DNA of 64,000 nt from Phyllobates terribilis (GCF_046119375.1 NW_027362762.1:90768001-90832000), one strand, 5' to 3'. Counted from the first letter of the stretch, positions 1 through 39,645 are shown. Numbers and translations: made by a program. The notes: generated by a model from the letters alone, not told the origin.

Positions 1-520
1 TGGTGTTTTTCATTGGTTAAATGACTTTGGGTCACTGATCTCATACCAGTATTTCATACATAGTGATGGACCACATCAAATTAAAGTCACTCCAGCATGG
101 CCCAAAAGGGTTCTGGGCATCAAAGTGGGCAAATAGCCACTTTTCACAGATTTGAATAAGTAACTGGTGTTTTTCAGGGTTAAATGACTTTGGGTCACTG
201 ATCTCATACCAGTATTTCATACATAGTGATGGCCCGCATCAAATTCAGGTCACTCCAGCCTGACCCAAATGGGATCTGGGCATCAAAATGGGCATCAAAA
301 TTGGCAAATAAGCATCAAAATTGGCAAATAGCCAATTTTCAAAGATTTGAATAAGTAACTGGTGTTTTTCATTGGTTAAATGACTGGGCCACTGATCTCA
401 TACCAGTATTTCATACATAGTGATGGACCACATCAAATTCAGGTCACTCCAGCCTGGCCCAAATGGGTTCTGGGCATCAAAGTGGGCAAATAGTCACTTT
501 TCACAGATTTGAATAAGTGT
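1..520. repeat. Left terminal-inverted-repeat array, ~3 copies of a 164-bp unit
   Basis: Unit start TGGTGTTTTTCA recurs at 1, 165 and 360; the second unit is lengthened by internal GCATCAAAATTGGCAAATA duplications. Confidence 0.93.
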
Positions 521-1493: not shown

Positions 1494-4282
1494 GTGAAGA
1501 GAAGGTACGTCTGCATTTTAATATCGATTACAATGGCTTGGAAATATTTCATGACCAAGATCTGGCTGAAGATAACAGTGAAGCTATTCAATAAACACAA
1601 ATCTACCTTACACTTGGATGGATACAGAAAGCCTTCATCTGTTTGGGGGATCATGCCTTCCCACATACTGGATAACAACCTGAAGACTCGAAAGTGGCTT
1701 TACCAATTATGGCATGAAGATCGCAGATGTTTGCACAAAAGAACAGAATCATCGGCAGCATCTTTTACTACAGCTACAGACTGCAACAGTGTGAATGAGG
1801 ATGATCAGCTGTATTGTATATGCAGGCAAAAAAACAATCCAGATGAACCATATGCGCAATGTAGTTCATGTCAAGACTAGTTTCATCCAGCCTGTGTGGG
1901 ATATGTGACCATTGAGGATATAGAAGTTATCTCACCATGGTTTTGTCCATCATGCAAAAAAACCTCACTACAATCAAGGACTATATCTGTTGAATCAGAA
2001 AGTAAAGACATAAAAAGGAATTTATTCCCTAACATTCAGGAAAATACAATTCCAACATTCCAAAATAGTCCAACACAAGAGCATATAAGTGAAGAAGACA
2101 ATGAAGAAAATGCCACATCAGATTACCTGGGTAACAATAACCATCAAACTTTGGACAACAAAAGCCAAACAATTAAGTCTTTGACTGTCCAAAAAATGCT
2201 CCATGTTTACACCAGTACAACAAGGACATCTGACAGTAAAAATGGACTATTTTGTTCTGATTGTCCAGCAGAGTTTTGTTTGACAATTTCTAAAGAGGAA
2301 TGGAGTCAAATAAAGCCAATTAAAAAGTATGGCTATAGAATATTAAAACCTGGCTGGGCAGATATCTTGTGTAGGAAATTTCACAAAGTCAACAATGTTT
2401 GTGTTATAAAATTCATTTATAGCCGAGTAAGATCAATTCAGTCAAGGGAAAAAAATGCATTGTATTGGCATGCCAGAGCAATATGCAAGTTTGCTGGATG
2501 TACAAAGTATTTTTTTTCAATTGATAAAAAACCCAAAAAAGAATGTTATGAAGTTGAGATAAATGTAAATGTTTCTGGATCCATTAAACATGTCAGAAGC
2601 CAATCCTTCCAGAGGCATACACGGCAAAAGGAAAGGAACACTTTAAAAATGGAATTAGGACAGTTGAAACCAAGTCTACTTTATACCAAAAAAGTAGCAA
2701 GCTCTGATGCAGAGGAACTATTCTTTGGCAATTTAAACAATGTGAAAACAAGGAATATAATCCAGAAAATCTCAAGTGAGAAAAATCTTGAGAACAGATT
2801 GAGCAAAGATTTTTTCATGGATTGTCTGCTTGTGCAAAAGTTGCAAACAGAAAGTGTCCAAAACCCAACAGAGCTTAACCAGGCGTACATGCAGTACTTT
2901 GGAGTGTCTCCATTTGTTGTACACATGTACTCAGACGCACAGTTGTATGTACTAAAAGACTTGCAAGGAGCAAAAAAATGTTGCTTGTATTTAGATGCAA
3001 CTGGATCAGTAATTAAAAAAACAGAAAACATATCACATAAAATTCTATATTATGCATTGTGCATATTAGTGCCTGGGAAAGCTAAAATTACATTACCTAT
3101 AGCGGAACTGATGTCATCAGACCAGAGTACTCCAACAATTCAGCATTGGTTATCTTGTCTGTGTCGTGATTTTTTTTATGTTTGCAAACAGAAACTCGTA
3201 CCGCAGAAAGTGGAGCTGGATTTTAGCTGGGCGCTTATCCACGCAGCATTAAATACATTTTGCAATTTTGGTTTAAGTGAGTATTTACAAAAATGCTTTA
3301 CAGCTGCAGAAGGAAAAATGAAATGCAATTTCACTGTTATCCACATATGTTCTGCTCACATGATAAAGCTAGTTAGCATGAAAGCAACCAGACACAATGT
3401 AAGCAAGCAAAAAAAGGAGTTTTTCATACATTTATTTGCTTTGCTGCAATATGCAATCAATATTAATGACCTTAAAAATGTACTTGCACAGATGGTGTAT
3501 GTGTTCCAGGCCAATGTGCAAACAAGGAATTGTAAAAAGTATATGAAAACTAAGAAAAAACATTGAAAACCAAGATCTTAATGATACAGAGGTGATTCCT
3601 GGCATGAGCACTGAGAGCAAAATTCATTTGGATGGAACTGATGGAAACATATAAAAGAGTCACCATTTTCTAAAGTTTTTTTTTAAATTATTGAAGATGC
3701 AAAACGATTGGCCCAAGAGGAGAGTAACCAACAGGTGTGTGGTGATGTCAATGAATTGTTCTGCCCTCCTCTCATATCTGTCTTGGGAGTCATATTGTGC
3801 CAGAATCCCACTGTGGAGCGGACTCATGATAAACTACATAAACAGGGGGCAGCGAGGGACACCAATTCTATAGCCGAAAACTGATTTTGTGTTGTAAAAA
3901 AAGTTGTTTTAAATGATAAATTACACAGGAGGCCGGGTGACTTTCTGCAACAGATGCATACATTTCTAATTGGAAGGATACGGGAAATTGGACTTAATGT
4001 ATTAAAAACAAAGGTGATTACAGAAACCCTTTCAGAAAATGAGAGAATACAATCTGTGACTCCAGAAATGAAGCCAGAACTTGTGTTACAACAAAACACG
4101 CAACTGGAGGAGCCATTTTGTAAAAAAGAAATGTGGTAAAAAAGGAAAGAAAAAAATAGTCCAAAAAAGGCAAAATATTACAACCCCCCGAACACCACAA
4201 AAAAAAGATAATGCAATGAAATCAATTTGTCCACCCTGGGCAGGAAAAGGCAGACTTGGGAGAAGAAAAGTGATTTTAAAAA
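1494..4282 (+). pseudogene. PHD finger + MULE/NOF-type DDE transposase, 5' part, disrupted
   Basis: C4HC3 PHD LYCICRQ…CSSCQD*FHPACVG…WFCPSC (TAG at 1878-1880). D at 2994 (YLDATG), D at 3219 (ELDFSWAL), CSAH at 3348-3359, E at 3876 (TNSIAEN*F). Frameshifts at ~3550-3800; stops at 3882 and 4137. Confidence 0.85.
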
Positions 4283-4291
4283 CAGACAGTA

Positions 4292-5193
4292 ATGTCACAG
4301 ACACAGAAACTCGGGAGAATCTTATTATCGCAAGCCCAAATATTACAAGAGCCACAAACAGACAAAAAACGGAAAAGGAGGGGAGGACGCAAACATAGCA
4401 AACCCCCCAGGCATGACAACTCGCCGAAAGAAATATTTTTAACATCACATAAATCCAATGTTCTGAATTTCTCAAAACAAGTCTTAACTCAGAAACAAGA
4501 TGAAGTTCTTTTACTTGGCTTGAATTTTGTACCAGACAGTAATTTCAACCTTTTCTCCACTCTATTGGATCTGAATAGATTCATACGGAATCTTAATATA
4601 AAAAAACACTTTACAACAGAGGATAATGAGCAACCTGAACTCCCTCAAATTACTGTCAATGAATACAGAGACTTGAATTTCAAGGAACAGATGTCTTTAT
4701 TGCATTTGCAGGATCTTCAGAATCCTTTGGAACCGGCTTCTATTCAAACCTCGATGTCTACTTCATTCAAAACTAGAAATCCTTCTTTTTATCCCTTACA
4801 AACACGGGTGGACTGTATGTGTCCTGGAAGCGATCCAATGGAAAGAGAGCTCAAATCGCTGGCACAGGATGTCAAGCATCATGGTTCCCACCATAACTTA
4901 TCATCTTTACACTATCAAGCATTGCAGGAATTGAGAAATATGCCACATATTGTTATACGTATGGCTGATAAGGGGGGCTTAGTAGTTGTGCTGGACACTG
5001 ACACATATAGATCCCAGGTTGCATCTTTATTGGAGGATTCATCCACATATCGTAAATTAAGGTGTGATCCGATTGTAGATATTAAAAAACAAACCTATGA
5101 AATTGTAAGTGACGGTTATATGTTGGGTGTATTATCTAAAAACCAAAGAGATTACCTTTTGGTAGATTTTCCAATCACCCCTATTATGCATGC
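4292..5193 (+). pseudogene. Penelope-like ORF, N-terminal part
   Basis: NVLNFSKQVLT..QDEVLLLGLNFVP and VIRMADKGGLVVV motifs; rejoins across the LTR element as PIMHA|LPKVHK. Confidence 0.88.
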
Positions 5194-6418
5194 TGTAACG
5201 GGTCTGGGAGGCGGAACCTCTGAGCTACTATACAAGAGGGCGGTCCTTGTAAGGGAGCGGGTGGCGACCAGGCAGGCAGTCACAGTAGGTGACCGGGACA
5301 GTCTCTAGAAGAACGGGCAGGAGGTCACGGCAAGTGACCGGGGCAGTTTCTGGGTGAACGGGCAGATGGTCATGGCAAGTGACCGGGGCAGTCTCTGGGT
5401 GAACGGGCAGATGGTCACGGCAAGTGACCGGGGCAGTCTCTGGGTGAACGGGCAGATGGTCACGGCAAGTGACCGGGGCAGTCTCTGGGTGAACGGGCAG
5501 ATGGTCACAGCAAGTGACCGGGGCAGTCTCTGGGAAAAGGGTTGGTACGACCTGTGGCGGCTGATGGTAGACGTGAGCTCCCAGGTGAGCAGGCGAGAGT
5601 CTCTGGATAAACGGGTGGTCACAGCATGTGACGGCGGAGCCTCCAGGAAGACCAACAGACAGGCGACAGATGAGCGCTCCCAGGTGAGCGGGCAGGAGTC
5701 ACTGGACAGGCAGGTGGTCACAGCACGTGACGGCAGAGCCTCCAGGTAGGCTAGCAGACAGGCAGCAGATGAGCGCTCCCAGGTGAGCGGGCAGGAGTCA
5801 CTGGGCAGGCAGGTGGTCACAGCACGTGACGGCAGAGCCTCCAGGTAGGCTAGCAGGCAGGTAGCAGATGTGCGCTCCCAGGTGAGCGGGCAAGCTGGTC
5901 CATAGACAGACTGACAAGAGTTGGAAGGCAGACCGTCGGACCTCAGGCAAGCAGGCAGGTAGTTGATGTGCGCTCCCAGGTGAGCGGGCAAGCTGGTCCT
6001 TAGACAGACTGACAGGAGTAGTAAGGCAGACCGTCGGACCTCAGGCTAGCAGGCAGGTAGCAGAATATCGGGCAGGAAACAGACAGCAAACTGGCAGGAC
6101 TCTGGCAGGAATCAGGCAGGTAACTGGCAACGGGACCTGAGGGCTGAAGCAGAGTAGAACAGTGCAACAACATTGCTCGGGCACCTCCATTTTGGAGGAG
6201 GTGCCTTATATATGGTGAAGTCCTCCGGCCATTGGCCGGGGACTCCTTAGGACGGCGCGCGTGGCCCCTTTAAGAGGGAGGGAGCGCGCGCCCTAAGCAC
6301 AGTGGCCGGGAAGGAGCGCGCGCTGCCAGCAGAGCGGGAGGAGGACGCCGGGCTCGGAGCAGAGAGGTGAGGGGAACAGCGTCCCTGCCTAGCAGAGGGC
6401 AGGGACGCCGACGCTACA
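5194..6418 (-). repeat. 3' LTR (1225 bp) with internal 45-bp and ~72-bp tandem units
   Basis: Direct repeat of 10634-11903; adjacent to the polypurine tract. Confidence 0.96.
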
Positions 6419-9400
6419 GTACCCCCCCCCTTTAGGCCCCCCCTTTTTTAGGCCAGACAGAAATTTAGCAAGGATGAGAGGGGCATGGATGTTCTCCCGG
6501 GGCTCCCACGTTCTCTCTTCAGGACCAAACCCCCTCCAATCTACTAGAAAAAAGGTCTTCCCTCTTACCCTTTTGGTGGCCAGAATGTTCTCTACCTCAA
6601 ATTCGTTTTCAGCGGAAACCGGAGCAGGAGGCGTGCCTGTAGACTTGGAAAAAGAGTTAAGTACCACAGGTTTGAGGAGAGATACATGGAAGGAGTTAGG
6701 GATCCGCAAGTTGGCCGGGAGTTTCAATTTATAGGCCACCGGGTTGATCTGACTGATGACTTCCAGAGGACCGATGAACCGAGGCCCTAACTTATAGGAA
6801 GGAATCTTGAGCCGGACATACTTGGACGAGAGCCAGACCTTATCCCCTGGACGGAATTGAGGAGGATCCAGACGTTTTTTGTCAGCATGTCTTTTCATAC
6901 GCTCGGATGACAGAAGGAGTGCGGACCGGGTACTCTCCCATGTGGAGGAAAATTTGTTAACAAGAGATTCCGCAGCCGGATTGTCCACCGAGGTAGAGAC
7001 AGGAAACGGGATCCGAGGATGCTGACCGAAGACTACAAAAAACGGGGATTTGGAGGAAGATTCGCTCTCGTGATTGTTGTACGAGAATTCGGCCCATGGC
7101 AGGAGATCCACCCAGTCAGAATGGTGGGCATTAACGAAGTGCCGGAGGTAACTGGTCAGGATCTGATTGATCCGCTCCACTTGACCATTAGACTGTGGGT
7201 GGTAAGCGGAGGAGAAGTCCAGGGTGACGTCTAGCAATTTACAAGTGGCTCTCCAGAAACGAGAAGTGAACTGTACCCCACGATCCGACACGATGTGACG
7301 GGGCAGGCCATGAAGACGGAAGATGTGGCGGATAAAGTCTTTAGCCAGCTCGGGTGCAGGCGGGAGGCCTGGCAAGGGAATGAAGTGAGCCATCTTGGAA
7401 AAGCGGTCAGCGACCACCCAAATGACCGTACAACCTGCAGAGACGGGAAGATCAGTAATGAAGTCCATCGCAATATGCTGCCAGGGGGCAGCAGGTACTG
7501 GCAGAGGAAGAAGGCGACCGGCTGGCAGGTGTCTCGGAACTTTGTTGCGGGCACAGGACACACAGGCAGAAACAAAGTCTATTACATCCTTGCGCAGGTT
7601 AGGCCACCAGTAGTGCCGGGAAATAAGCTGGAGGGTCTTTTTCTGACCGGTGTGGCCAGCTAGTTTAGACGAATGACCCCAGTGTAGGATCTTCTCCCGA
7701 TCAGGTACCGATACGAACGTCTTACCGGGAGGGAGACGATTTAGACTCACGGGAGCCACCTGCATTACTCTGGCGGGATCGATGATATGTTTAGGTTCTT
7801 CCTCAAGATCAGATACCAGAAAGGATCGGGACAAGGCGTCTGCTTTGATGTTTTTGTCAGCCGGACGAAAATGTAGAATAAAATCAAAGCGAGCAAAAAA
7901 CAAGGACCACCAGGCTTGGCGCGGATTAAGTCTCTGGGCATGCTGGAGATAAGCCAAGTTCTTGTGGTCAGTGTAAATTATTACCGGATGAAGAGCCCCC
8001 TTGAGTAGGTAACGCCACTCCTCCAATGCCAGCTTGATGGCCAATAACTCTCGGTCTCCTATGGAATAATTGCGCTCAGAAGAGGAGAAGAGTTTGGAGA
8101 AGAAGCCGCAAGTTACCATCCTCCCGGAAGAAGATTTTTGAGTAAGTACAGCTCCGGCTCCAGAGGAGGAGGCGTCAACCTCCAGAAAGAACTGCTTGTT
8201 GCCGTCCGGACGATGCAGCACCGGGGCGGAAGAGAAAGCCTGTTTTAAGGAAAGAAAGGCCTCCTCTGCTTCGGGCGGCCACTCTTTGGGATTAGTACCC
8301 TTACGGGTGAGCGCGGAAATTGGGGCAGTCCGGGAAGAGAAGTGCGGTATGAAGAGGCGGTAGTAGTTGGCGAAGCCCAGGAACCGCTGAATGGCCTTCA
8401 ACCCCTCCGGTCGGGGCCATTTCTCCATGGCAGACAGTTTCTCTGGATCCATTCGTAGGCCGGTCTGAGAAATAATGTAGCCCAAAAACGGAAGCGAGGT
8501 CTGCTCAAAGATGCACTTCTCATATTTAGCGAAGAGGTGGTTCTGCCTGAGCCTGAGCAGGACCTGACGAACGTCCCTCCGGTGAGTCTGGAGATCCGGA
8601 GAGAAGACCAAGATGTCGTCCAGGTACACCACAACGCAGGAGAAGAGAAGGTCCCGGAAGATGTCATTGACCAACTCTTGAAAGACGGCAGGAGCGTTAC
8701 AGAGACCAAAGGGCATTACCAGATATTCATAGTGGCCGTCCCGGGTGTTGAATGCAGTCTTCCATTCATCCCCTTGACGGATACGGACCAGGTTGTACGC
8801 CCCACGGAGGTCCAGTTTGGTGAAGACTCTAGCCCCCCTCAGGCGATCAAATAATTCTGGAATGAGCGGAAGGGGGTACTTATTCTTCACCGTGATCTGG
8901 TTAAGGCCTCTATAGTCTATACAGGGACGGAGAGAGCCGTCCTTCTTTTTTACGAAGAAGAAGCCTGCTCCCGCCGGGGAGGTAGATTTCCGGATGAATC
9001 CCCTTGCCAAATTCTCCTCAATATATTCGGACATCGACCGGGTCTCAGCTGCGGACAATGGGTAAATACGCCCACGGGGAGGAGTAGTACCGGGTAACAG
9101 GTCGACAGGACAGTCGTGTGGTCTATGAGGGGGTAATGTCTCTGCCTCCTTTTTATTAAAGACATCAGCAAATGACCAATAGGGAATCGGAAGTCCAGGT
9201 AGATTAGTTGGGGTAGGAGAAGGACGGACGGGATGAACAGGAACCAAACAAGTCTTATGACAGTCCTGTCCCCAGCGAAGGACTTCTCCGGTCTGCCAGT
9301 CAAGCACGGGTGCATGTCTCTGGAGCCAAGGTAGACCTAGTAAGAGGGCGTGAGAGAGTCCAGGCAGAACATGAAAAGAGATGCTCTCAGAGTGCAGCAT

Positions 9401-9688
9401 TCCCACCTGCAGAGTTACGGATTCGGTGATGAGTTGGATGGGACGTGGTAAGAGGCCTCCATCCACAGCAGCGACAGATAATGGTACAGCCAGAGGTTTG
9501 GTGGGAATGCGGTATTTTTCTACCAGGGACTGTGAGATAAGATTCCCGGCCGCTCCAGAGTCAAGTTGGGCTAGTTCGAAATAACGGTTCTCCCCGCAGA
9601 TAATAGAGACTGACAGTAGCAGAGATGGAGAGGATTTATTCTTGTCTAGGTTGACCTCTCTGAGCGAACCTAGACACAGGCGTTTCCC
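6389..9688 (-). CDS. pol: pol: protease, RT, RNase H, integrase, chromodomain; expressed by -1 frameshift
   Basis: LDSGAAGNLI, LDLRGAY, YLDD, HHCC plus DDE integrase, FEVENILATK…WRGFGPEERTWEP. The frame is open from the slippery site GGGAAAC (9688-9682). Confidence 0.95.
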   Translation of the reverse strand, partial: GKRLCLGSLREVNLDKNKSSPSLLLSVSIICGENRYFELAQLDSGAAGNLISQSLVEKYRIPTKPLAVPLSVAAVDGGLLPRPIQLITESVTLQVGMLHSESISFHVLPGLSHALLLGLPWLQRHAPVLDWQTGEVLRWGQDCHKTCLVPVHPVRPSPTPTNLPGLPIPYWSFADVFNKKEAETLPPHRPHDCPVDLLPGTTPPRGRIYPLSAAETRSMSEYIEENLARGFIRKSTSPAGAGFFFVKKKDGSLRPCIDYRGLNQITVKNKYPLPLIPELFDRLRGARVFTKLDLRGAYNLVRIRQGDEWKTAFNTRDGHYEYLVMPFGLCNAPAVFQELVNDIFRDLLFSCVVVYLDDILVFSPDLQTHRRDVRQVLLRLRQNHLFAKYEKCIFEQTSLPFLGYIISQTGLRMDPEKLSAMEKWPRPEGLKAIQRFLGFANYYRLFIPHFSSRTAPISALTRKGTNPKEWPPEAEEAFLSLKQAFSSAPVLHRPDGNKQFFLEVDASSSGAGAVLTQKSSSGRMVTCGFFSKLFSSSERNYSIGDRELLAIKLALEEWRYLLKGALHPVIIYTDHKNLAYLQHAQRLNPRQAWWSLFFARFDFILHFRPADKNIKADALSRSFLVSDLEEEPKHIIDPARVMQVAPVSLNRLPPGKTFVSVPDREKILHWGHSSKLAGHTGQKKTLQLISRHYWWPNLRKDVIDFVSACVSCARNKVPRHLPAGRLLPLPVPAAPWQHIAMDFITDLPVSAGCTVIWVVADRFSKMAHFIPLPGLPPAPELAKDFIRHIFRLHGLPRHIVSDRGVQFTSRFWRATCKLLDVTLDFSSAYHPQSNGQVERINQILTSYLRHFVNAHHSDWVDLLPWAEFSYNNHESESSSKSPFFVVFGQHPRIPFPVSTSVDNPAAESLVNKFSSTWESTRSALLLSSERMKRHADKKRLDPPQFRPGDKVWLSSKYVRLKIPSYKLGPRFIGPLEVISQINPVAYKLKLPANLRIPNSFHVSLLKPVVLNSFSKSTGTPPAPVSAENEFEVENILATKRVRGKTFFLVDWRGFGPEERTWEPRENIHAPLILAKFLSGLKKGGPKGGGYCSVGVPALC
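6422..6434 (-). other. Polypurine tract
   Basis: G-run on the minus strand immediately before the 3' LTR. Confidence 0.85.
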
Positions 9689-10620
9689 GACCTCTCCGGG
9701 CAGGTACGGATCCGGTGCTCCTTACTGCCACAGTAGAAGCAGCTCCCTTCGGCACGGCGTAAGTCCTGACGAGTTTTGACCATCTTGATCTGGTCGACCT
9801 GCATAGGCTCAGGAGAGTGTACCTGGGGAGAGACGGATGGAGTGACGGGTTTCTGAAAAGTAGGAGCTAGACGTGGAAACCTCCTCTCACGGGTGACCTC
9901 TTTGGCACGCTCCTGGAACCGTAGGTCAATCCGGGTGGCAAGAGTTATTAGGTCATCGAGAGTGGTAGGAATGTCCCGACCGGCAAGTTTTTCTTTAATA
10001 CGGCCGGACAGACCCTCCCAGAAGACGGATACCGGAGCGTCGTTATCCCAGGCCAGCTCCGAGGCAAGGGTACGGAACCGTATGGCATATTGGCCCACGG
10101 TGAGACTTCACTGACGGAGGCGTAGCAGAGATGATGCGGATGAGGTCTTCCGTCCGGGTTCGTCGAAGACTTTCCGGAAAGCCGTGAGAAAGGCAGGCAA
10201 GTCGGACACCAGGGGGTCTCCTCTCTCCCATAGAGGATTTAGCCAGGCCAGGGCCTCCCCGGTGAGATGGGACATGATGAAGGCAATTTTGGCCCGGTCG
10301 GAGTTAAACTGGTGGGACAATAGTTCAAAGTGCAGGGTGCACTGATTTATGAAGCCCCGAGCCTGGGCGGAGTCGCCTCCGAAGCGAGGAGGTGCACAAA
10401 GCCGGGGTCCGGGGTAGGATACCATGGTATTGGTGGGCAGCGGAGCTGCCGGGTTGCGAGTCATGGCACTGGCGGTGGTTGCTGGTGGAGCAATCAGAGT
10501 GTCCAGGCGAGAATTGACATTCCGCAGGCGACCCAGGATGGACTCCTGTTGGGACCTCTGACGGGACAGTTCATGACAGAGGTCCGAGAGCGAGGCAGCT
10601 TGGGTGCCACCGGGTTCCAT
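9670..10620 (-). pseudogene. gag: gag (PEG10/RTL1-like capsid + CCHC knuckle) with one in-frame TGA
   Basis: PPRFGG…ARGFINQC, KIAFIMSHLTGEALAW, CFYCGSKEHRIRTC. TGA at 10110-10108 in LRQ*SLTVGQY. Confidence 0.92.
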
Positions 10621-10621
10621 G

Positions 10622-10631
10622 GCCCGAGCAA
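10622..10631 (-). other. Non-tRNA primer-binding site (self-priming type)
   Basis: Minus strand TTGCTCGGGC lies 2 nt from the 5' LTR and is complementary to the LTR sequence GCCCGAGCAA (11667-11658). Confidence 0.8.
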
Positions 10632-10633
10632 AC

Positions 10634-11903
10634 TGTAACGGGTCTGGGAGGCGGAACCTCTGAGCTACTATACAAGGGGGCGGTCCTTGTAAGGGAGCGG
10701 GTGGCGACCAGGCAGGCAGTCACAGTAGGTGACCGGGACAGTCTCTAGAAGAACGGGCAGGAGGTCACGGCAAGTGACCGGGGCAGTTTCTGGGTGAACA
10801 GGCAGATGGTCACGGCAAGTGACCGGGGCAGTCTCTGGGTGAACGGGCAGATGGTCACGGCAAGTGACCGGGGCAGTCTCTGGGTGAACGGGCAGATGGT
10901 CACGGCAAGTGACCGGGGCAGTCTCTGGGTGAACGGGCAGATGGTCACAGCAAATGACCGGGGCAGTCTCTGGGTGAACGGGCAGATGGTCACAGCAAGT
11001 GACCGGGGCAGTCTCTGGGAAAAGGGTTGGTACGACCTGTGGCGGCTGATGGTAGACGTGAGCTCCCAGGTGAGCAGGCGAGAGTCTCTGGATAAACGGG
11101 TGGTCACAGCATGTGACGGCGGAGCCTCCAGGAAGACCAACAGACAGGCGACAGATGAGCGCTCCCAGGTGAGCGGGCAGGAGTCACTGGACAGGCAGGT
11201 GGTCACAGCACGTGACGGCAGAGCCTCCAGGTAGGCTAGCAGACAGGCAGCAGATGAGCGCTCCCAGGTGAGCGGGCAGGAGTCACTGGGCAGGCAGGTG
11301 GTCACAGCACGTGACGGCAGAGCCTCCAGGTAGGCTAGCAGGCAGGTAGCAGATGTGCGCTCCCAGGTGAGCGGGCAAGCTGGTCCATAGACAGACTGAC
11401 AAGAGTTGGAAGGCAGACCGTCGGACCTCAGGCAAGCAGGCAGGTAGTTGATGTGCGCTCCCAGGTGAGCGGGCAAGCTGGTCCTTAGACAGACTGACAG
11501 GAGTAGTAAGGCAGACCGTCGGACCTCAGGCTAGCAGGCAGGTAGCAGAATATCGGGCAGGAAACAGACAGCAAACTGGCAGGACTCTGGCAGGAATCAG
11601 GCAGGTAACTGGCAACGGGACCTGAGGGCTGAAGCAGAGTAGAACAGTGCAACAACATTGCTCGGGCACCTCCATTTTGGAGGAGGTGCCTTATATATGG
11701 TGAAGTCCTCCGGCCATTGGCCGGGGACTCCTTAGGACGGCGCGCGTGGCCCCTTTAAGAGGGAGGGAGCGCGCGCCCTAAGCACAGTGGCCGGGAAGGA
11801 GCGCGCGCTGCCAGCAGAGCGGGAGGAGGACGCCGGGCTCGGAGCAGAGAGGTGAGGGGAACAGCGTCCCTGCCTAGCAGAGGGCAGGGACGCCGACGCT
11901 ACA
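10634..11903 (-). repeat. 5' LTR (1270 bp)
   Basis: Near-identical to 5194-6418 but 45 bp longer (one extra tandem unit). Confidence 0.96.
11691..11697 (-). promoter_or_regulatory. LTR TATA box (TATATAA)
   Basis: Starts ~30 nt upstream of the putative self-primer / transcription start at 11667. Confidence 0.65.
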
Positions 11904-11908
11904 CATGC

Positions 11909-13543
11909 ATTGCCCAAAGTACATAAGGGAGTCAGCCCACCCCCTATGAGGCCCATCATCTCGGGCATAGGATCGGTCACTGAACGATTAAGTGAGTGGG
12001 TTGACTCGCTTTTGCAACCATTATCACAACGAACAGCTGGTTTTCTCAAAGATACTGGAGATGTATTGGGACAACTGTCTAATATAGTTTGGAGACAAGA
12101 TTTTGCATGGATTGCTTGTGACGCAACGGCATTATATACCTCAATCCCCCGAGAAATTGCAGTGGAAGCACTCTCATATCATACAGTGATTATACGGAAG
12201 ACCTATGTACATTTATTTTACAAGTGGTCAATTTTCTTATGACATGTAATTATTTTTCTTTTGATGGCCAATATTATTTACAATCTAGAGGCGTGTCAAT
12301 GGGTGCTAAACACTCTCCATCATTAGCCAATCTAGTTATGGCCTATTGGGAGGAAGTTTATCTTTACAGTGCTGATAATCCTTTCACCAAACACCTGGTT
12401 TGGTATGGCAGGTACATAGATGACCTACTGTTCGTTTGGTCGTGCGATGTGTCTGCCATACCCGACTTTGTGCAATATTTAGATGTCAATCATTGCAATC
12501 TGACATTTACGCATAGGGTTGAAATTTCTGCCATTTCATTTCTGGATTTGAATTTGCGGGGCATCCCAGATCGACACATATTGACTAGTACTTACTGTAA
12601 ACCACAGTCTGGAAATACTATTTTGCATGCAAGTAGTAGTCATCCACCCCATACTATCAAAGCATTACCTGTGGGTGAATTTACACGTGTTGCAAGGAAC
12701 TGCCATGATGAAAACACTCTATCTACAGAACGTACACATACATGGTCCAAACTTTCAGAAAGGGGGTATCCTAAATGGACCCTGAATAGAGCCAAACATA
12801 TAATCAAACACAAGAGACACCAAAATTTGGGACCACATATTGTTCACAATAATTCTAATAGACTAGTCCTGTCATTGCAGTATAGCCCTCAGTTTAATAT
12901 AATCAAATCTATTTTTTTCAAACACATATCCATTTTGTATGAGGATGCAACTTTACCTAAAATTTTACAATCCAATTGCTCTGTAGTAGCAAGGAGAGGT
13001 GTCACTATTGGTAACATCGTTTCACCGTCTTTTTTCTCCTCTAATAATTTAAAAAGTAATACTTGGCTAAATTACTCTGGTTTCTATAAGTGCGGCCAAA
13101 ATAGATGTCAGACATGCAAATATACATCAGCTACTAAAGAATTTTTCAATTATAACCACACAGAAACTTTCAAAATCAAAGGACACATAAATTGTAACAG
13201 CACGAATGTGGTTTATATAATTCTATGCAAAATTTGTGATCTTATATATGTTGGTTGCACAACAAGAAATCTTAAAGTTCGCATTTCAGAACATTTAACT
13301 GATATATCTTCTCTTTCTAGTACCAACCGTAATATTTCACATGCCTCTAGGCATTTTATTCAATTTCACCAGAGATCGTGCAGTTCTCTACAGGTCATTG
13401 GTATAGAGAGGGTTAAACCTGCACATCGAGGAGGAGATTCCAGACACCGTTTACTCACCAGAGAAGCATTCTGGATTTACAACCTTGGATCCCGCTTCCC
13501 AGACGGACTCAATGCACGCCGTGAAATCATGTTTCATTATTGA
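11909..13543 (+). pseudogene. Penelope-like RT + Cys-rich linker + GIY-YIG endonuclease, one frameshift near 12180
   Basis: LPKVHK…MRPIISG, GVSMGAKHSPSLANL, YGRYIDD, CGQNRCQTC, NVVYIILCKICDLIYVGCTTRNLKVRISEH. Confidence 0.93.
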
Positions 13544-13774
13544 TTCTACTTCATGTTTCTGTCAGTTTATTTTATCTATTTCATGTAACACTCTATGTTA
13601 AAATGAATTTTAACTCTTTTCTTGTTCTTTCTCTCTATAATGGTTTTATTGCTTTTTCCATTTTATGTGATTGGCTCACACTAATTATGCACCCTATTCA
13701 CACTCTCATGTGACCAAGTATATCGATCTGATTGGTTGTTATTGGATATAATACTATAGTGTGTCATATGCATG

Positions 13775-13820
13775 TCAGCTTTGACAAAGAACACATCTCT
13801 GTGTTCGAAACGCGTTGCGT
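13775..13820 (+). ncRNA. Minimal type I hammerhead-like motif with U3-A8 core variant
   Basis: TTGACAA-A-GAACAC/ATCTCT/GTGTTC-GAAA-CGCGT; palindromic ACGCGT in place of helix III. Confidence 0.6.
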
Positions 13821-14003
13821 TTTTTCCATGTGAGATTCCCCGAAATTTTTAAACTGCGTGGATTTGCTTCAATAAATATTTGCACTTTTGGAAGCTGGTT
13901 TCTTCAACTTTTTTTCATGCAAACACGTGAGGCCACACGTACCCGTGCTTCCTTCCAAAGCCTACAGCAATCAGGTGAGCTGAATCTACTTTCCTCTTTT
14001 TTC

Positions 14004-14362
14004 ATTTTAAAAAATACATGTACAATTGACAATATCCTTTATATTGCCCACTTGGTGATGAAGACAAATAATTGGTTACTGAAAGAACTTTAAGAACTAA
14101 AAACAAGAGATAGGAGTATAAAGTTGCTCATTGATGTTCACAGCTGTTTTCAAAGGAAAGACTTGATAAAGGGAAAGATCACATGGCTACAGCAATTGGA
14201 GCGGTTCCATGGAAGAACTATATGGGACGCGTATGGCAGTGAAGAAGAGTTCATAGTCTGCAGACTCAGCTATCTAAACAGCACAACATCAACATTCACT
14301 TGCACAGAGCCATCTTGCCCCAACCCTTCAATTCTGAGAACTGCAAACAGCATTGAAATTTG
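14004..14362 (+). pseudogene. Continuation of the MULE ORF after the Penelope insertion; cysteine-protease-like segment
   Basis: Removing 4283-14013 gives in-frame RRKVILK|NTCTIDNILYIAHL…WDAYGSEEEF. Ends at splice donor TG|GTAAGT; one TAA at 14091. Confidence 0.75.
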
Positions 14363-14519
14363 GTAAGTAGAGGTGATTTAAAACACAGTTTTGTTGCGGT
14401 ATTTGAAGGAAATCTTTTTAGTTTTCAATGGCACAATTCCTTTTTACTATATAAATTCCAAGTATGTTAAAATTTTGCAAAAAAATAAAAAAATTACAAT
14501 ATTGCTTTTTGGTGTTTGT

Positions 14520-15060
14520 TTTCACCCCTTTAGGCTCTTCGACATATCCATACGTCCAGGATAGCTGGTACTTACTGACCTTGGACGTACAGATACGTCA
14601 TGGAGATTTTGCTTGCACAGAGGATGTGCGCGCTCAATCGCTGCCGGGTATCAGCTGATTCTGACAGCTGACACCCGGCACTTAGTGCCAGGAGTGGAGC
14701 ACACACCGCTCCCAGGATTTTAACCCCCTAAATACTGGTGAAATTGATTTCGATCGCAGCATTTAACATACATGCAGAGAGAGGGGGCCCCGTCTGCTCT
14801 CCAATTGGTGCCCCCGCGATGTCATTGCGAGGAGCCGATCGTTGCTATGGTATGGAAATCGGATGTCATCATGACGACATCCAGGTCACCAGAGCTAGCA
14901 AACCTGCTACATCATGCTCAGAGCATGGTGTAGCAAGTTTGTGTGTCAGTGCAGGGCTGACAGTTTATAAAGCATTGCAATGCTCCTACATCCCTATACT
15001 TTATAAGCAATCAAACTGCAAAAAGTGAAAGTCTCATAGTGGGACAAAGTAAAAAAAAAT
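14520..15060. mobile_element. Non-autonomous piggyBac-like fragment
   Basis: Degenerate TTAACCCCTT-type terminus followed by GACGTACAGATACGTC; recognition only. Confidence 0.45.
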
Positions 15061-15101
15061 TGAAAATAGAAAAAAATATAAAGATAATAAATATATACAT
15101 G

Positions 15102-15103
<2 letters not shown>

Positions 15104-15140
<37 letters not shown>
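15104..15140. repeat. (TA)n microsatellite
   Basis: Direct reading. Confidence 0.95.
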
Positions 15141-15143
<3 letters not shown>

Positions 15144-15218
15144 TCCATAAATTAAATAGTTTTTTGAAAAAAAATGAACAAAAAAAAATAAAATAAAAAA
15201 ATTAACAAAAAAAAAAAA

Positions 15219-15455
15219 GTGGTTAGCACTGCAGCCTTGCAGCGCTGAGTTTCTGGGTTCAAATCCCACCAAGGACAACATCTGCAAGGAGTTTGTATAT
15301 TCTTCCAGTGTTTGTGTGGGTTTCCTCCGGGTTCTCCTGTTTCCTCCCACACTCCATAGACATACTGATAGGGAATCTAGATTGTGAGCCCCAATGGGGA
15401 CAGCGATGATAATGTCTGTAAAGCATTGTGGAATTAATGGCGTTATATGTGAGGA
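15219..15455 (+). mobile_element. tRNA-derived SINE with V-SINE-like core
   Basis: GTGGTTAGCACTG…GGGTTCAAATCCC (B-box-like), then GTGGGTTTCCTCCGGGT.CTCC.GTTTCCTCCCAC. Confidence 0.7.
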
Positions 15456-16142
15456 AAATATATATATATTTACTTAATTTATTTACTGATTATTCCTTCA
15501 TGCATTTTGCCATCTTTCCTTTTGTCTGGTCCTTAAACCTTGCATGGATTCCTCGTACTGTTCTTTTTTATGTTTTTATCTGTTTTTCTATAAATTTTTC
15601 TTTGCATTTATATTAGGTTTTAGTAATTCTTCTCGTGCTAGAGTCTTTATGATCTGATGCATGTGACCTGTATTTACCTGTGGGACTATATCGCTAATAT
15701 CACATTTAAGACATTTACAAGGTGATTTACGCCAGAATTCTGCCATAATAGCTTTCAGAAATTGGGGCCATTGTGCTGGGTTTGAAACTAACTTACTTAA
15801 AATAGTGTATGGATGTAAGTTTTCTTAAAGCATTACTTTAAATCAAATTTATGAACAAAAAAATAAAATCAAGAGTTGAGCATCACAAATTATTCAAGGT
15901 TACACTGCCTGTGCAAAAAAAGTATGTAAGACAAGATTCCAAACAAGAATAAGTTGTATTCAACATTATGCCTTATTGTAGTTTGGTTGTGGATTTGGGT
16001 GACAAATAAAATTGTGGATTCTCCTAGTAACACCCAAATTATTTGTAGAAAAAAAATGAATTTCCTCTTTGACCTCAACATTGATTTATTTGAAATATAA
16101 ATAATAATTTATTGTATATAATTACTTATTCTAATTTCTTAG

Positions 16143-16220
16143 CTGTGAAAAGTTCAGTAATCATCAAGCCACAATTAATGCATGGACGTCGGGTTTTCAA
16201 AATGACTGCAACAGAAAACG
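16143..16220 (+). other. Candidate exon of the MULE gene
   Basis: Pyrimidine tract + AG acceptor, 78 nt, phase 2-2, open frame CEKFSNHQATINAWTSGFQNDCNRK; weak GTTAAT donor. Confidence 0.45.
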
Positions 16221-16726
16221 GTTAATTTTTCCTAAAGTATAAACTAGCATGCTTGATATGAAATAATGTTTCAACATACAGGAGAAATATTTCATAAACT
16301 ATTTCTACACTGAATAGTACACCCCTTAAGGATTCAGTTATTGTAAAATTGGTGATCAGAAATTTCTTCATTTTTTTTCATTTCTGCTTCACAATATTTA
16401 CTTTTTTCCACTTTTATTTTTACAGCATTGATCACCCAATCTTATAGATGGCTGCTTTTTCTACTATACCAACACTAAATATTACCTTTATGTAAATATA
16501 AAGCTGTCCTGTGTTGGATAAAAGTAAAATAGGACCTTTTTAGAGCATGTACAGTATGTAGGTGAAGATTGCAATACCTGAATAACTTACAAATTTACAC
16601 TTGTTTATATTACATTTTTATTTGAAATCCCCTTTTAATATTCCACATAATCATTCCTTTGCAGCCATTAAAAAATTACTTTTTTTTTCATGTATACAAT
16701 AAATAGCTTTATTGATTTTCTAACAG

Positions 16727-16894
16727 AAGCAACAAAGATTCCTGTAAAGGAAAACGAATATGCTTAGGAAAAGAATTTAAGAATGGATCTCCCGGTCTTC
16801 TTTTTGTAAACATTGTTGGTGACCCAACTTGCAAGCTGAAACCTCCTCGGAGTCCAGAAACACTTCCTTCAACCATTACATTTATACAAATAAG
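16727..16894 (+). other. Candidate exon of the MULE gene
   Basis: TTTTCTAACAG acceptor, 168 nt, phase 2-2, open frame SNKDSCKGKRICLGKEFKNGSPGLLFVNIV…PETLPSTITF; AG|GTAAAT donor. Confidence 0.5.
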
Positions 16895-20179: not shown

Positions 20180-21069
20180 TTAGGCTGAGTTTCGGAGGAG
20201 CACCAAGGTGGCAGAAACGGGAGCATTAAGCAGGCTGTCATAGTAAACTGTCAGTGATCGTGTCAGAGATCGCAGATGGAAGCTGGCATTCCATTTAAAT
20301 GCTGATTGTCAGAGATTGACAGAAGTTAAATGGTTAACAGCAGCTGCTGTAGCTCATTACTGGCTGTTAGAAACAGATATTTAATATATTCCATATCTCC
20401 GTGTAGAGAGAGCCCTGCTCCTGACCCCATTCCACATGCCATCATCCCTGCAATCATGTACATGTATGTGATGTTGTGTTACGGGGTTAAATGGAGCTTC
20501 ATTCAAATTATTACATTGGAATAGCAATTTCCAGCTCACACATAAAACGCAGTATGAGCCAGGAAGTCACATGACTCGAAAGACAACCAGAGCCATACTG
20601 AAAACCTGGGGAAGATGTCATTTGGTGAAAAATTAAATAAAAAAAATTAATGGGAGTGTTTCTTTAAGGAAGCTACCAAAATAATATTTATGTCTCTGTA
20701 TAGATTTACAAGGTAAATGCAGTTGGTGTACTTATTGCTGTGCCTCAACATGAAATAGACTTAAAGAAGCCATGTGAATAAACCCTTATGTGAGTTCACA
20801 ATTATTATGTATTTAATAATTATTTTTTTTTAAAAGGTACAACACTGTAGCAGTCACCTACAACACAGGAAATCATGTTCCGCCCAGGTGACGGCGTAAA
20901 ACTTGTGACTCCAAAATTCTTGAAAACTGTTTTAAAACCTGGCGTTACACCCGTATATATTATTTTTGTGAGACAAAATGGCGATAAACTCGATAACTAA
21001 GAAGAAATATTAGTTTGTTAAAATAAAAGTTCTCTGCACATGTGGTTGTTGTTTTATTTACAAAATGAT

Positions 21070-21345: not shown

Positions 21346-21356
21346 TTTATTGTCCT

Positions 21357-21800
21357 GTGATGCCCAGAACCCATTTGGGCCAGACTGGAGTGACCTGAAT
21401 TTGATGTAGGCCATCACTATGTATGAAATATTTGTGTGAGATCAGTGGCCCAAAGTCATTTAAACCCTGAAAAACACCAGTTACTTATTCAAATCTGTGA
21501 AAAGTGGCTATTTGCCCACTTTGATGCCCAGAACCCTTTTGGGCCATGCTGGAGTGACTTTAATTTGATGTGGTCCATCACTATGTATGAAATACTGGTA
21601 TGAGATCAGTGACCCAAAGTCATTTAACCAATGAAAAACACCAGCTACTTATTCAAATCTGTGAAAAGTGGCTGTTTGCCCGCTTTGATGCCCAGAACCC
21701 ATTTGGGCCAGGTTGGAGTGACCTGAATATTATGTGAGCCATCACTATGTATGTAGTGGTGGTGTGAGATTAGTGGCTCAAAGTCATTTAACCCTTTCAG
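21357..21800. repeat. Right terminal-inverted-repeat array (164-bp unit)
   Basis: Reverse complement of the array at 1-520. Confidence 0.93.
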
Positions 21801-22529
21801 TAACGCCCTTCAGTGCCCACTTTGATGCCCATTTTTATGCCAGTTTTATGACATGGAGCTGCTTTTAAGCGTTTTCACATCAGGGCACCTCGCTGCAATA
21901 TATTCTTTCATTTATTTATCTATTTTTTGTAATTAAACCTGTAGAAAACAGCAAAACAGAAATTGCTGAATAAGAAACCAACTCAGCCCCGAATAAAAAA
22001 CCAACTTCAGCATCGTGCCTAACACTCCCTGTATGACATTACATAGCCAGATCTTTAGGAATAATATTTCTAGAGTCAGTTGATGATATGTAAATAAAGG
22101 CGTTGACTGTCATGAGAAATAATGATGAGGATTATATGCAGGGGCGACCCCGCGCGCCAGGGGCTCCTTGCTTTTGGAAAGGGCCTGATTTGGTCTCTGA
22201 GGGTCTCATCTCCGGCCATTTTATCACTCAAGTCTTATGGAGAATGTGGACTCAGTTCACACTAGTTTTGTTGCTTTCTGCCCTTGATTTTGGGCTAGAT
22301 GTGACCTGAGGCTGGGGTGGGTGTTTTTTTTACACCCTGGAACCATTTTTTTCTATTTGGAAAAATTTTACTTCTGAATCAAACGGTCCCCCACAGGGGC
22401 GTGTGATACATAGGCCGACTACTCTGGGGACACTAACGCCCCCATGGCTCATTCTGGGAGCGCAGGGTCTCGATAGCATTTCATGTCCATTCATTACTGT
22501 TATTATTTCTCGTGACTTATTCTTGTCAT

Positions 22530-25504: not shown

Positions 25505-25658
25505 NNNNNNNNNNNNNNNNNNNNNNNNNNNNNNNNNNNNNNNNNNNNNNNNNNNNNNNNNNNNNNNNNNNNNNNNNNNNNNNNNNNNNNNNNNNNNNNN
25601 NNNNNNNNNNNNNNNNNNNNNNNNNNNNNNNNNNNNNNNNNNNNNNNNNNNNNNNNNN
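25505..25658. other. Assembly gap (154 N)
   Basis: Direct reading. Confidence 1.
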
Positions 25659-38739: not shown

Positions 38740-38960
38740 GCCATGCTTACCGGGATAGGAGGTCATGCTTACCAGGATTGAGATGAAGGGTGTCATGCAT
38801 ACCAGGATTGGGGATGAGGGGGCCATGCATACCATGATTGGGAGGAGGGGTGCCATGCATACCATGATTGGGAGGAGGGGTGCCATGCATACCATGATTG
38901 GGAGGAGGGGTGCCATGCATACCAGGATTGGGGATGAGGGGGCCATGCATACCATGATTG
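38740..38960. repeat. 30-bp tandem repeat, ~7 copies
   Basis: CATGCATACCATGATTGGGAGGAGGGGTGC. Confidence 0.92.
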
Positions 38961-39645
38961 AGATGATTTGTGGTAAAATTAGGGGCCTCGGCTTATACTC
39001 AAGTATATACGGTATTAATAATAAATATAATTTTTTTATACCCAATATTTTGGTACCCATCCCATGGTCCAGAAATGGCAGTGCTTTTTAAACCCTTTAT
39101 TTTTTTCAACCTCTCAACATCCAAGACAGAAGATAGAAAGCAACAAGTTTCAAACATAGTCCAACGTTCTTTGTCAGAGCTTGTTGGAATGAGCAACGTT
39201 CAATGCTCAGGTGAACAAATCAAAAACTTGATGAAGAAAAGAGGGGGAAGGGAAAGAAAAACAATTGTAATGAAATACAAACATGAATACAATTCAGCAA
39301 AACATAAATTCTAAATAAAATTACTTGAAAAAAACTGCAAGAAAAAACACAAGAAAATAGTAATGATGCATGATTTTACTCTGTAAATTCAAACCTTGGT
39401 GAAAGCGAGTGCCAAGGATTTATAACTTACAGGCAGGGAGGAGATAATACAAGAAAGGTAATAGACCTTACAGAGGTAGTAAATAATACGGAGAGCTCAA
39501 CACTATTCCTTAGTTCAGACGCGGAAAAAGCCGTCAATCATCTAGGATGGTCATTTATGTTTGAAACTTTGAACCAATTTGGACTCTTGGGACCATTCGT
39601 TACAGCTCTAAGAAGTCTATACTCCCAACCATCAGCGTCAGTTAA

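Follow-up and report, generated by a model that had tools for sequence, protein, structure and literature searches.

In a 64,000-nucleotide stretch of the Phyllobates terribilis genome (GCF_046119375.1 NW_027362762.1:90768001-90832000; hereafter the window), a transposase-like reading frame on the plus strand breaks off at position 4282, and the question raised by this locus is whether the gene ends there or continues, beyond a long insertion, into a cysteine-protease-like tail. A preliminary description, made from the sequence alone, had proposed such a tail as part of a 'reader-transposase-protease polyprotein'. The present analysis indicates that the window very probably harbours a dead NOF/Rehavkus-type transposable element, whose protein comprised a PHD finger, a DDE core with a CxxH motif and a C-terminal cysteine isopeptidase of 270 residues. 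The latter has the fold of ubiquitin-specific proteases (USPs), is assigned to the C14orf28/DRIP1 branch of that fold and would serve as a deconjugase in active copies. Established parts of this reading are that the fusion is in frame, that intron positions are conserved, that the tail has the USP fold and that Cys, His and Asp together with four zinc-finger cysteines are retained throughout the family. The reader-transposase-protease architecture proposed earlier stands, with a PHD finger, a DDE core and a USP-like tail as its modules; the term 'polyprotein' does not, as the protein is a multidomain fusion and nothing shows that it is cleaved.

The evidence for an in-frame fusion lies at the borders of the insertion. 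By direct reading, the 10-bp sequence ATTTTAAAAA is present on both sides as a target-site duplication, so that excision of positions 4283-14013 leaves a single copy and restores the pre-insertion sequence. After excision, the frame ...GRRKVILK runs directly into NTCTIDNILYIAHL. Homologs retrieved with the open reading frame (ORF) upstream of the insertion are uninterrupted across the junction point: the lizard protein P0001 reads ...KKTIILRNTCTIDNLLFIIHM... at this place, and the fish proteins P0003 and P0005 as well as P0008 continue likewise. The duplication and the insertion-free homologs of fish, lizard and invertebrates therefore bear out the earlier proposal that removal of the insertion rejoins the frame. 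The Penelope-like element, which was later struck by a gypsy element, landed precisely where the transposase passes into the Cys box; by its position the insertion hid the continuity of the gene.

Downstream of the insertion, tail sequence was recognised in four segments (Table 1). The transposase exon presumably encodes the initial third of the USP-like domain, and three small spliced exons the remainder. Each segment was searched singly and not as part of a joined, spliced peptide. Tail exon 1, with its Cys codon TGT at 14019-14021, matches the family profile at positions 11-129 (E 9e-10 and 4e-26), and residues 696-825 of P0001 map to 13971-14360 (tblastn, E 8e-40). It contains an in-frame TAA (14091-14093) that is absent from the preliminary description. 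The matches of P0001 continue collinearly, with residue 826 corresponding to the split codon TG|C, residues 827-852 mapping to 16144-16221 and residues 856-902 to 16740-16877. The closest protein, P0036 of the frog Anomaloglossus, matches exon 2 with residues 19-44 (73% identity, E 3e-8; profile positions 129-158, E 0.06) and exon 3 with residues 46-101 (79% identity, E 1e-22; profile positions 158-202, E 1e-6). The splice sites read TG|GTAAGT (14362/14363), TTTCTTAG|C (16143), ACG|GTTAAT (16220/16221), TAACAG|A (16727) and AAG|GTAAAT (16894/16895), and every donor and acceptor dinucleotide of the proposed tail exons is intact. The exon end at 14362 and the two phase 2-2 segments downstream of it, all three suggested earlier, were thus confirmed by the collinear P0001 matches.

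The exon carrying the His box had not been located in the preliminary description, which proposed a tBLASTn search for it; it was found with the help of P0036. Past the third segment, P0005 reads ...NHFIGF...W.LYDG..., as does the frog protein. Residues 101-114 of P0036 match 20835-20876 (RYNTVAVTYNTGNH), and residues 138-176 match 20881-20997 in another frame (RPGDGV...IIFVRQ...), which identifies 20837-21000 as a fourth exon in which the His is kept and the W..YDG box is deleted. Its acceptor is TTTTTTTTTAAAAG|G, the His codon lies at 20874-20876, and the stop codon at 20998-21000 follows a C-terminus reading ...VTPVYIIFVRQ.... The lesion is a 65-nt deletion, with 23 codons of P0036 including W..YDG replaced by 4 nt and the frame shifted. 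Accordingly, the pieces of the window match the family profile collinearly at positions 11-40, 43-129, 129-158, 158-202, 205-219 and 241-270, positions 220-240 being missing. While the window copy has lost the Asp box and kept the His, both USP boxes hold at the level of the family.

Conservation of intron positions was examined on one distant copy, L003 (GCA_029979725.1). It has a 1112-aa ORF that encodes a PHD finger, a DDE core and the NTC box and ends with ...VVLW at TG|GTAAGC; three pieces further downstream cover profile positions 126-163, 162-194 and 205-269. L003 is thus divided into four parts just as the window copy is, the protein identity between them being ~30%. The preliminary description had made its proposal depend on conservation of the candidate exons and splice sites across family copies, and since the four-part split recurs in L003, such conservation is found there.

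The nature of the tail was addressed with an exhaustive search of 1.84 billion representatives, in which residues 520-810 of P0005 served as query and E <= 1e-3 as threshold. Among the 87 relatives found, the Cys is conserved in 67 of 70 (96%), the His in 40 of 42 (95%) and the Asp in 33 of 34 (97%). The four cysteines of the zinc ribbon in the fingers are retained in 71/75, 70/73, 36/38 and 33/35 cases, i.e. at least 94% each, and the site DAYGSEEEF, a putative counterpart of the QQDxxEF box of USPs, lies in a family motif D-x-x-G-x-E-x-[ED]-[FYML]. When a profile built from 27 members was compared with the PDB sequences, all 15 hits were USPs (best USP46, E 1.6e-4; also USP12, USP15 and USP2). 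In the alignment to USP46, NTC falls on the catalytic NTCY, GHF on GHY and W.LYD on W.LFD. The family profile alone succeeded: a single-sequence phmmer search of the tail against the PDB gave no match, and a word-index search with the tail region returned the query itself only.

The fold was modelled with AlphaFold2 on P0005:520-810 using the 87-row alignment (pLDDT 93.5, pTM 0.90). A Foldseek search of the PDB with this model yielded at least 422 chains at E < 1e-3, and among the matches listed all were USPs (best E 2e-10). VIA-align gave Z scores of 12.8-14.4 over 206-250 aligned residues, with all 50 of the 50 rows listed being catalytic domains of the USP family, CYLD included. Since the profile matches and the listed Foldseek and VIA-align matches were confined to USPs, the tail is a divergent domain of predicted USP fold, with thumb, palm and fingers in ~270 residues. 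The suggestion of a papain-like fold of the USP/C19 type, originally drawn from short motifs, is therefore supported at the family level by the profile comparison and by structure prediction, which had been recommended as a check and recovered this fold on the fish homolog. With canonical USPs (MEROPS C19: USP46, USP12, USP7, USP18, USP30 and Ubp8) the tail shares the thumb-palm-fingers fold, the four-cysteine zinc ribbon, the Cys of N-T-C at the start of a helix, the G-H-[FY] His box and the W..[FY]-D box. Unlike them, it is short (~270 aa), does not have a Q-Q-D box of canonical form, and begins with an additional beta hairpin in which P-W-G-G lies.

Within the USP fold, the structure in the Atlas that most resembled the tail model was a chordate cluster named 'Chromosome 14 open reading frame 28' (TM 0.78/0.69, rmsd 2.7, 258 residues). 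A cluster named 'Dopamine receptor interacting protein 1 family' reached TM 0.59, and clusters with Pfam UCH (TM 0.57-0.63) ranked below the C14orf28 cluster. In addition, one of the 87 relatives, the mollusc protein P0019 (E 3.5e-19), bears the NCBI name 'C14orf28 homolog'; a vertebrate C14orf28 ortholog was not among them. On the basis of the model and of the source name of P0019, the tail is assigned to the C14orf28/DRIP1 branch. A classification of 2023 describes C14orf28/DRIP1 as a papain-like deubiquitinase domain to which a second fingers-like domain is added (PMC10318531), and C14orf28 has been paired with USP18 (PMC9992864). Like the tail, the orphan chordate protein (~310 aa) has a compact core of USP type that contains Cys, His and Asp. 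The two differ in setting: C14orf28 is encoded by a host gene of its own, and the domain in the window forms the C-terminal end of a transposase enclosed by inverted repeats. The modelled similarity hints at a common origin of the C14orf28/DRIP1 gene and transposons of the window type. The word stem 'transpos' is absent from PMC10318531, and no paper in the searchable literature contained 'C14orf28' and 'transposon' together.

Upstream of the insertion, the transposase frame extends from ~1779 to 4282 and comprises a PHD finger followed by a long core. Residues 13-80 of P0004, whose Pfam PHD domain covers residues 15-61, match 1809-2024 (tblastn, E 3e-21), and Pfam PHD was also found in P0054, P0067, P0084 and P0111. 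Alignment A3 of the core shows invariant D237, D313, H355, C357, H360 and E551 (D, D, H-x-C-x-x-H, E); in the window the corresponding residues are D (2994-2996), D (3219-3221), H.C..H (3342-3359) and E (3876-3878). An AlphaFold2 model of the core (pLDDT 74) matches DDE transposases only, the best Foldseek match being ISCth4 of the IS256 family (E 9e-4), followed by Hermes, P element, RAG1 and Transib. A language-model feature search placed the core near clusters of Mutator-like elements (MULEs; 0.90-0.92), and Pfam MULE (PF10551) gave no match in any family member scanned. The transposase frame is interrupted by nine stops (1878, 3564, 3579, 3582, 3612, 3639, 3684, 3882 and 4137), of which the TGA at 3882 replaces the W of ENWF, and by one frameshift at ~4190-4230, just upstream of PPWAGKG. 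With ten in-frame stops in total, the frameshift, the 9.7-kb insertion and the 65-nt deletion of the Asp box, the window copy is dead.

The ends of the element are long inverted-repeat arms built of tandem units and enclose every tail exon. By blastn, 1-518 and 21355-21841 are 84-96% identical in inverted orientation, and Tandem Repeats Finder (TRF) reports a period of 194 with 1.9 copies for the left arm. The region of the preliminary description (4230-16894) is the 3' half of the single gene of an old foldback-type MULE, which spans from before position 1 to ~21841. Features shared with the NOF/Rehavkus group are the PHD finger on the transposase, the long tandem-repeat inverted ends and the DDE core with CxxH motif (PMC6446971), and the homologs P0003 and P0115 are named 'protein in NOF-FB transposable element' by their sources. 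The Rehavkus group is described from insects and annelids only, with no mention of a protease; the element in the window differs from that description in being of vertebrate origin, in its multi-exon gene and in its USP-like tail (PMC6446971). The name NOF/Rehavkus as used here combines two terms. Rehavkus is presumably equivalent to the RepeatMasker class MULE-NOF.

Other members of the wider family bear a different protease at the corresponding place. Among the relatives retrieved with a profile of the core, P0112 (ant), P0113 (Astyanax) and P0117 have this core immediately followed by Pfam Peptidase_C48 (Ulp1); neither the window tail nor the tails of its homologs match Peptidase_C48. Ulp1 (C48) domains are also carried by plant Mutator-like elements of the Kaonashi/VANDAL type (PMC13317346). 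In both cases a cysteine protease acting on ubiquitin-like proteins (UBLs) lies C-terminal of a MULE-type transposase, at the place of the USP-like tail in the window, whereas Ulp1 is of another clan and fold (Ulp1/adenain type, not USP). Literature searches returned no report of a USP or deubiquitinase domain on a transposase. Some DNA-transposon elements are known to have an OTU protease domain.

In active copies the tail would deconjugate ubiquitin or a UBL. Its substrate could be the transposase itself or chromatin and host factors at the site selected by the PHD finger, and deconjugation would stabilise the transposase or counter host silencing. This role is proposed because sister lineages hold Ulp1, a domain of the SUMO-protease type, at the same place. 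The third, USP-type module sits exactly where these lineages bear Ulp1, which argues that removal of ubiquitin-family marks is the selected function. Several observations weigh against the reading of the locus as a NOF/Rehavkus-type element with a USP-like deconjugase: (i) the identity of the tail to solved USPs is 9-14% only; (ii) neither UCH (PF00443/PF13423) nor any other Pfam family was found on the window exons or on P0005:525-800 at E up to 5; (iii) canonical USPs have a box G-L-x-N-x-G-N-T-C in which the Asn five residues before the Cys forms the oxyanion hole, and the Asn at -5 is unconserved in alignment A1 (e.g. S/K/T in ...I-x-L-x-N-T-C); (iv) the modelled sequence is that of an intact fish homolog and not of the window copy; (v) the literature yielded no enzymatic activity of C14orf28; (vi) the NOF/Rehavkus label fits on grounds of architecture, the source names of P0003 and P0115 and the published description, and not of reference proteins.

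Points (ii) and (iii) would suit the main rival explanation, by which the tail is a USP-fold pseudo-enzyme that binds ubiquitin or a UBL and anchors its transposase at modified chromatin or host factors. The description of C14orf28 without shown activity and as 'of unknown function' (PMC10318531) also agrees with it. However, retention of Cys, His and Asp across phyla at the frequencies given above is unusual for a pure binding scaffold, and sister lineages use a catalytic Ulp1 in the same position, so that a pseudo-enzyme appears rather unlikely. It is improbable that the tail is a fragment of a C14orf28-like host gene gained by transduplication in the manner of Pack-MULEs or Kaonashi, with no role in transposition in most copies. 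MULEs do acquire host sequences, Ulp1 included (PMC13317346), and chordates have a standalone C14orf28 family; yet the domain lies in frame and begins in the same exon as the C-terminus of the transposase, its catalytic residues and intron positions are conserved, and the architecture recurs, at 25-45% identity, in copies from frog, lizard, fish and sea cucumber and in further copies. As the fusion is in frame and widely conserved, any capture would be ancient and maintained by selection.

The original term 'polyprotein' implies a further explanation, in which the tail acts in cis as a protease that cuts the fusion protein, so that either the tail or the PHD part is severed from the transposase. 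A conserved P-W-G-G about ten residues before the Cys box might be taken as a cleavage site, given that USP-type enzymes cut after Gly-Gly. However, Pfam found no ubiquitin-like domain in the protein, and in the model the P-W-G-G stretch is folded into strands that pack against the domain (E2-5, E8-13), which leaves cis-processing highly improbable. A multidomain transposase with a deconjugating USP-like tail thus remains the preferred reading.

That cysteine proteases occur on proteins of DNA transposons was already known, an example being Ulp1 on plant Mutator elements (PMC13317346), and their role is unsettled. USP-like and Ulp1 tails now represent two natural variants that lend themselves to experimental comparison. 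The element also provides an evolutionary context for human C14orf28/DRIP1, which was recognised as protease-like only in 2023. A wider proposal is held tentatively, and is somewhat more doubtful than credible: C14orf28/DRIP1 may be a domesticated protease tail of the NOF/Rehavkus type, from a lineage that repeatedly took up interchangeable UBL proteases (USP-like or Ulp1), which would point to ubiquitin or SUMO deconjugation as the transposon's defence against silencing by the host or turnover of its transposase. For annotation, it is relevant that vertebrate NOF-type elements hold multi-exon genes whose last exons are easily overlooked.

Table 1. Features of the transposable element and of its nested insertions in the window
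Feature	Position	Strand	Evidence
Left long inverted-repeat arm, ~164-194-bp tandem units, truncated by window start	1-518	.	blastn, TRF
PHD finger of transposase, in-frame TAG at 1878-1880	1779-1970	+	tblastn P0004
DDE transposase core	1896-4282	+	tblastn P0001 52-679, E 7e-180
Target-site duplication ATTTTAAAAA, left copy	4273-4282 (right copy 14004-14013)	.	direct reading
Nested insertion, Penelope-like element (reverse transcriptase and GIY-YIG), itself split by gypsy	4283-14013, 9731 bp	+	Pfam, ORF reading
Ty3/gypsy-type long terminal repeat (LTR) retrotransposon within Penelope-like element, 6.7 kb	5193-11903	-	blastn of LTRs, flank reading
Tail exon 1, continuous with 4282; Cys box NTCTIDN, D..G.E..F motif, finger cysteines 1-2; donor TG|GTAAGT	14014-14362	+	profile, tblastn
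Tail exon 2, 78 nt, phase 2-2; third finger cysteine	16143-16220	+	P0001, P0036, profile
Tail exon 3, 168 nt, phase 2-2; fourth finger cysteine (SCKGKR) and palm strands	16727-16894	+	P0001, P0036, profile
Tail exon 4, newly located; His box ...TYNTGNH	20837-21000	+	P0036 matches, profile
Right long inverted-repeat arm, 164-bp units, 2.7 copies, 3' of last tail exon	21355-21841	.	blastn, TRF

The composition of the nested insertion was as follows. Its Penelope-like ORF at 4292-5308 resumes after 11904, beyond the gypsy element, and the ORF at 12224-13543 matches Pfam GIY-YIG (E 3e-6) and RVT_1 (E 1e-3). The gypsy element is bordered by a 5-bp duplication, CATGC, at 5188-5192 and 11904-11908. 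Its LTRs (5193-6418 and 10633-11903) are 98.5% identical by blastn, and a pol ORF of 1025 aa on the minus strand (6389-9466) was assigned by eye from motifs. The 1.2-kb LTRs hold tandem repeats of 45 bp and 99 bp, and one 45-bp unit distinguishes the two.

Further architectures were encountered among the relatives. A USP-like domain of the C14orf28 type ends the proteins P0024 (1308 aa; L001:2843-6769) and P0025 (1313 aa), and these were considered as proof of a transposase-USP fusion in a single ORF. They were rejected, as no similarity to the transposase could be detected in the ~1000 residues at their N-terminal side. This N-terminal part contains no Pfam family, and a feature search with it retrieved unnamed cnidarian and fungal clusters only, plus a faint lead to ISAzo13 transposases (0.78). 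P0024 and P0025 may represent a second mobile-element architecture for the USP-like domain. In P0014, P0106 and P0107 (RefSeq models from two loci of Melanotaenia boesemani), the USP-like domain is followed by Pfam PWP3A-B_C (E 1e-19), the C-terminal domain of PWWP3A/B (MUM1), which could be a real extra module of fish elements or the product of a chimeric gene model. P0113 has a PHD finger downstream of its Ulp1 domain.

Four small public runs, none of them on record as RNA and all DNA-like, cover the introns and cross the borders at 14362 and 16143 unspliced, and neither of the joints 14362^16143 and 16220^16727 is seen in them. In these runs, a short interspersed nuclear element (SINE)-like repeat at 15220-15450 reached a depth of tens of thousands in all four, and this repeat and a further one at ~14600-15060 account for the majority of the sequence words that had led to the runs. 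A contig of 180 nt from run X2 aligns solely from 16729 onwards (16729-16858), starting 2 bases inside exon 3, and its first 50 letters match nothing in the region compared; its origin could be a second copy or a molecule that had been spliced. Between the left arm and the gene, positions 840-1140 resemble by eye the 3' end of a CR1-type long interspersed nuclear element (LINE). The window contains a run of N at 25505-25658, and at 38894-39001 the part of this transposase family around ENWF gives a weak match by tblastn (E 0.02), which may be a small fragment of another copy.

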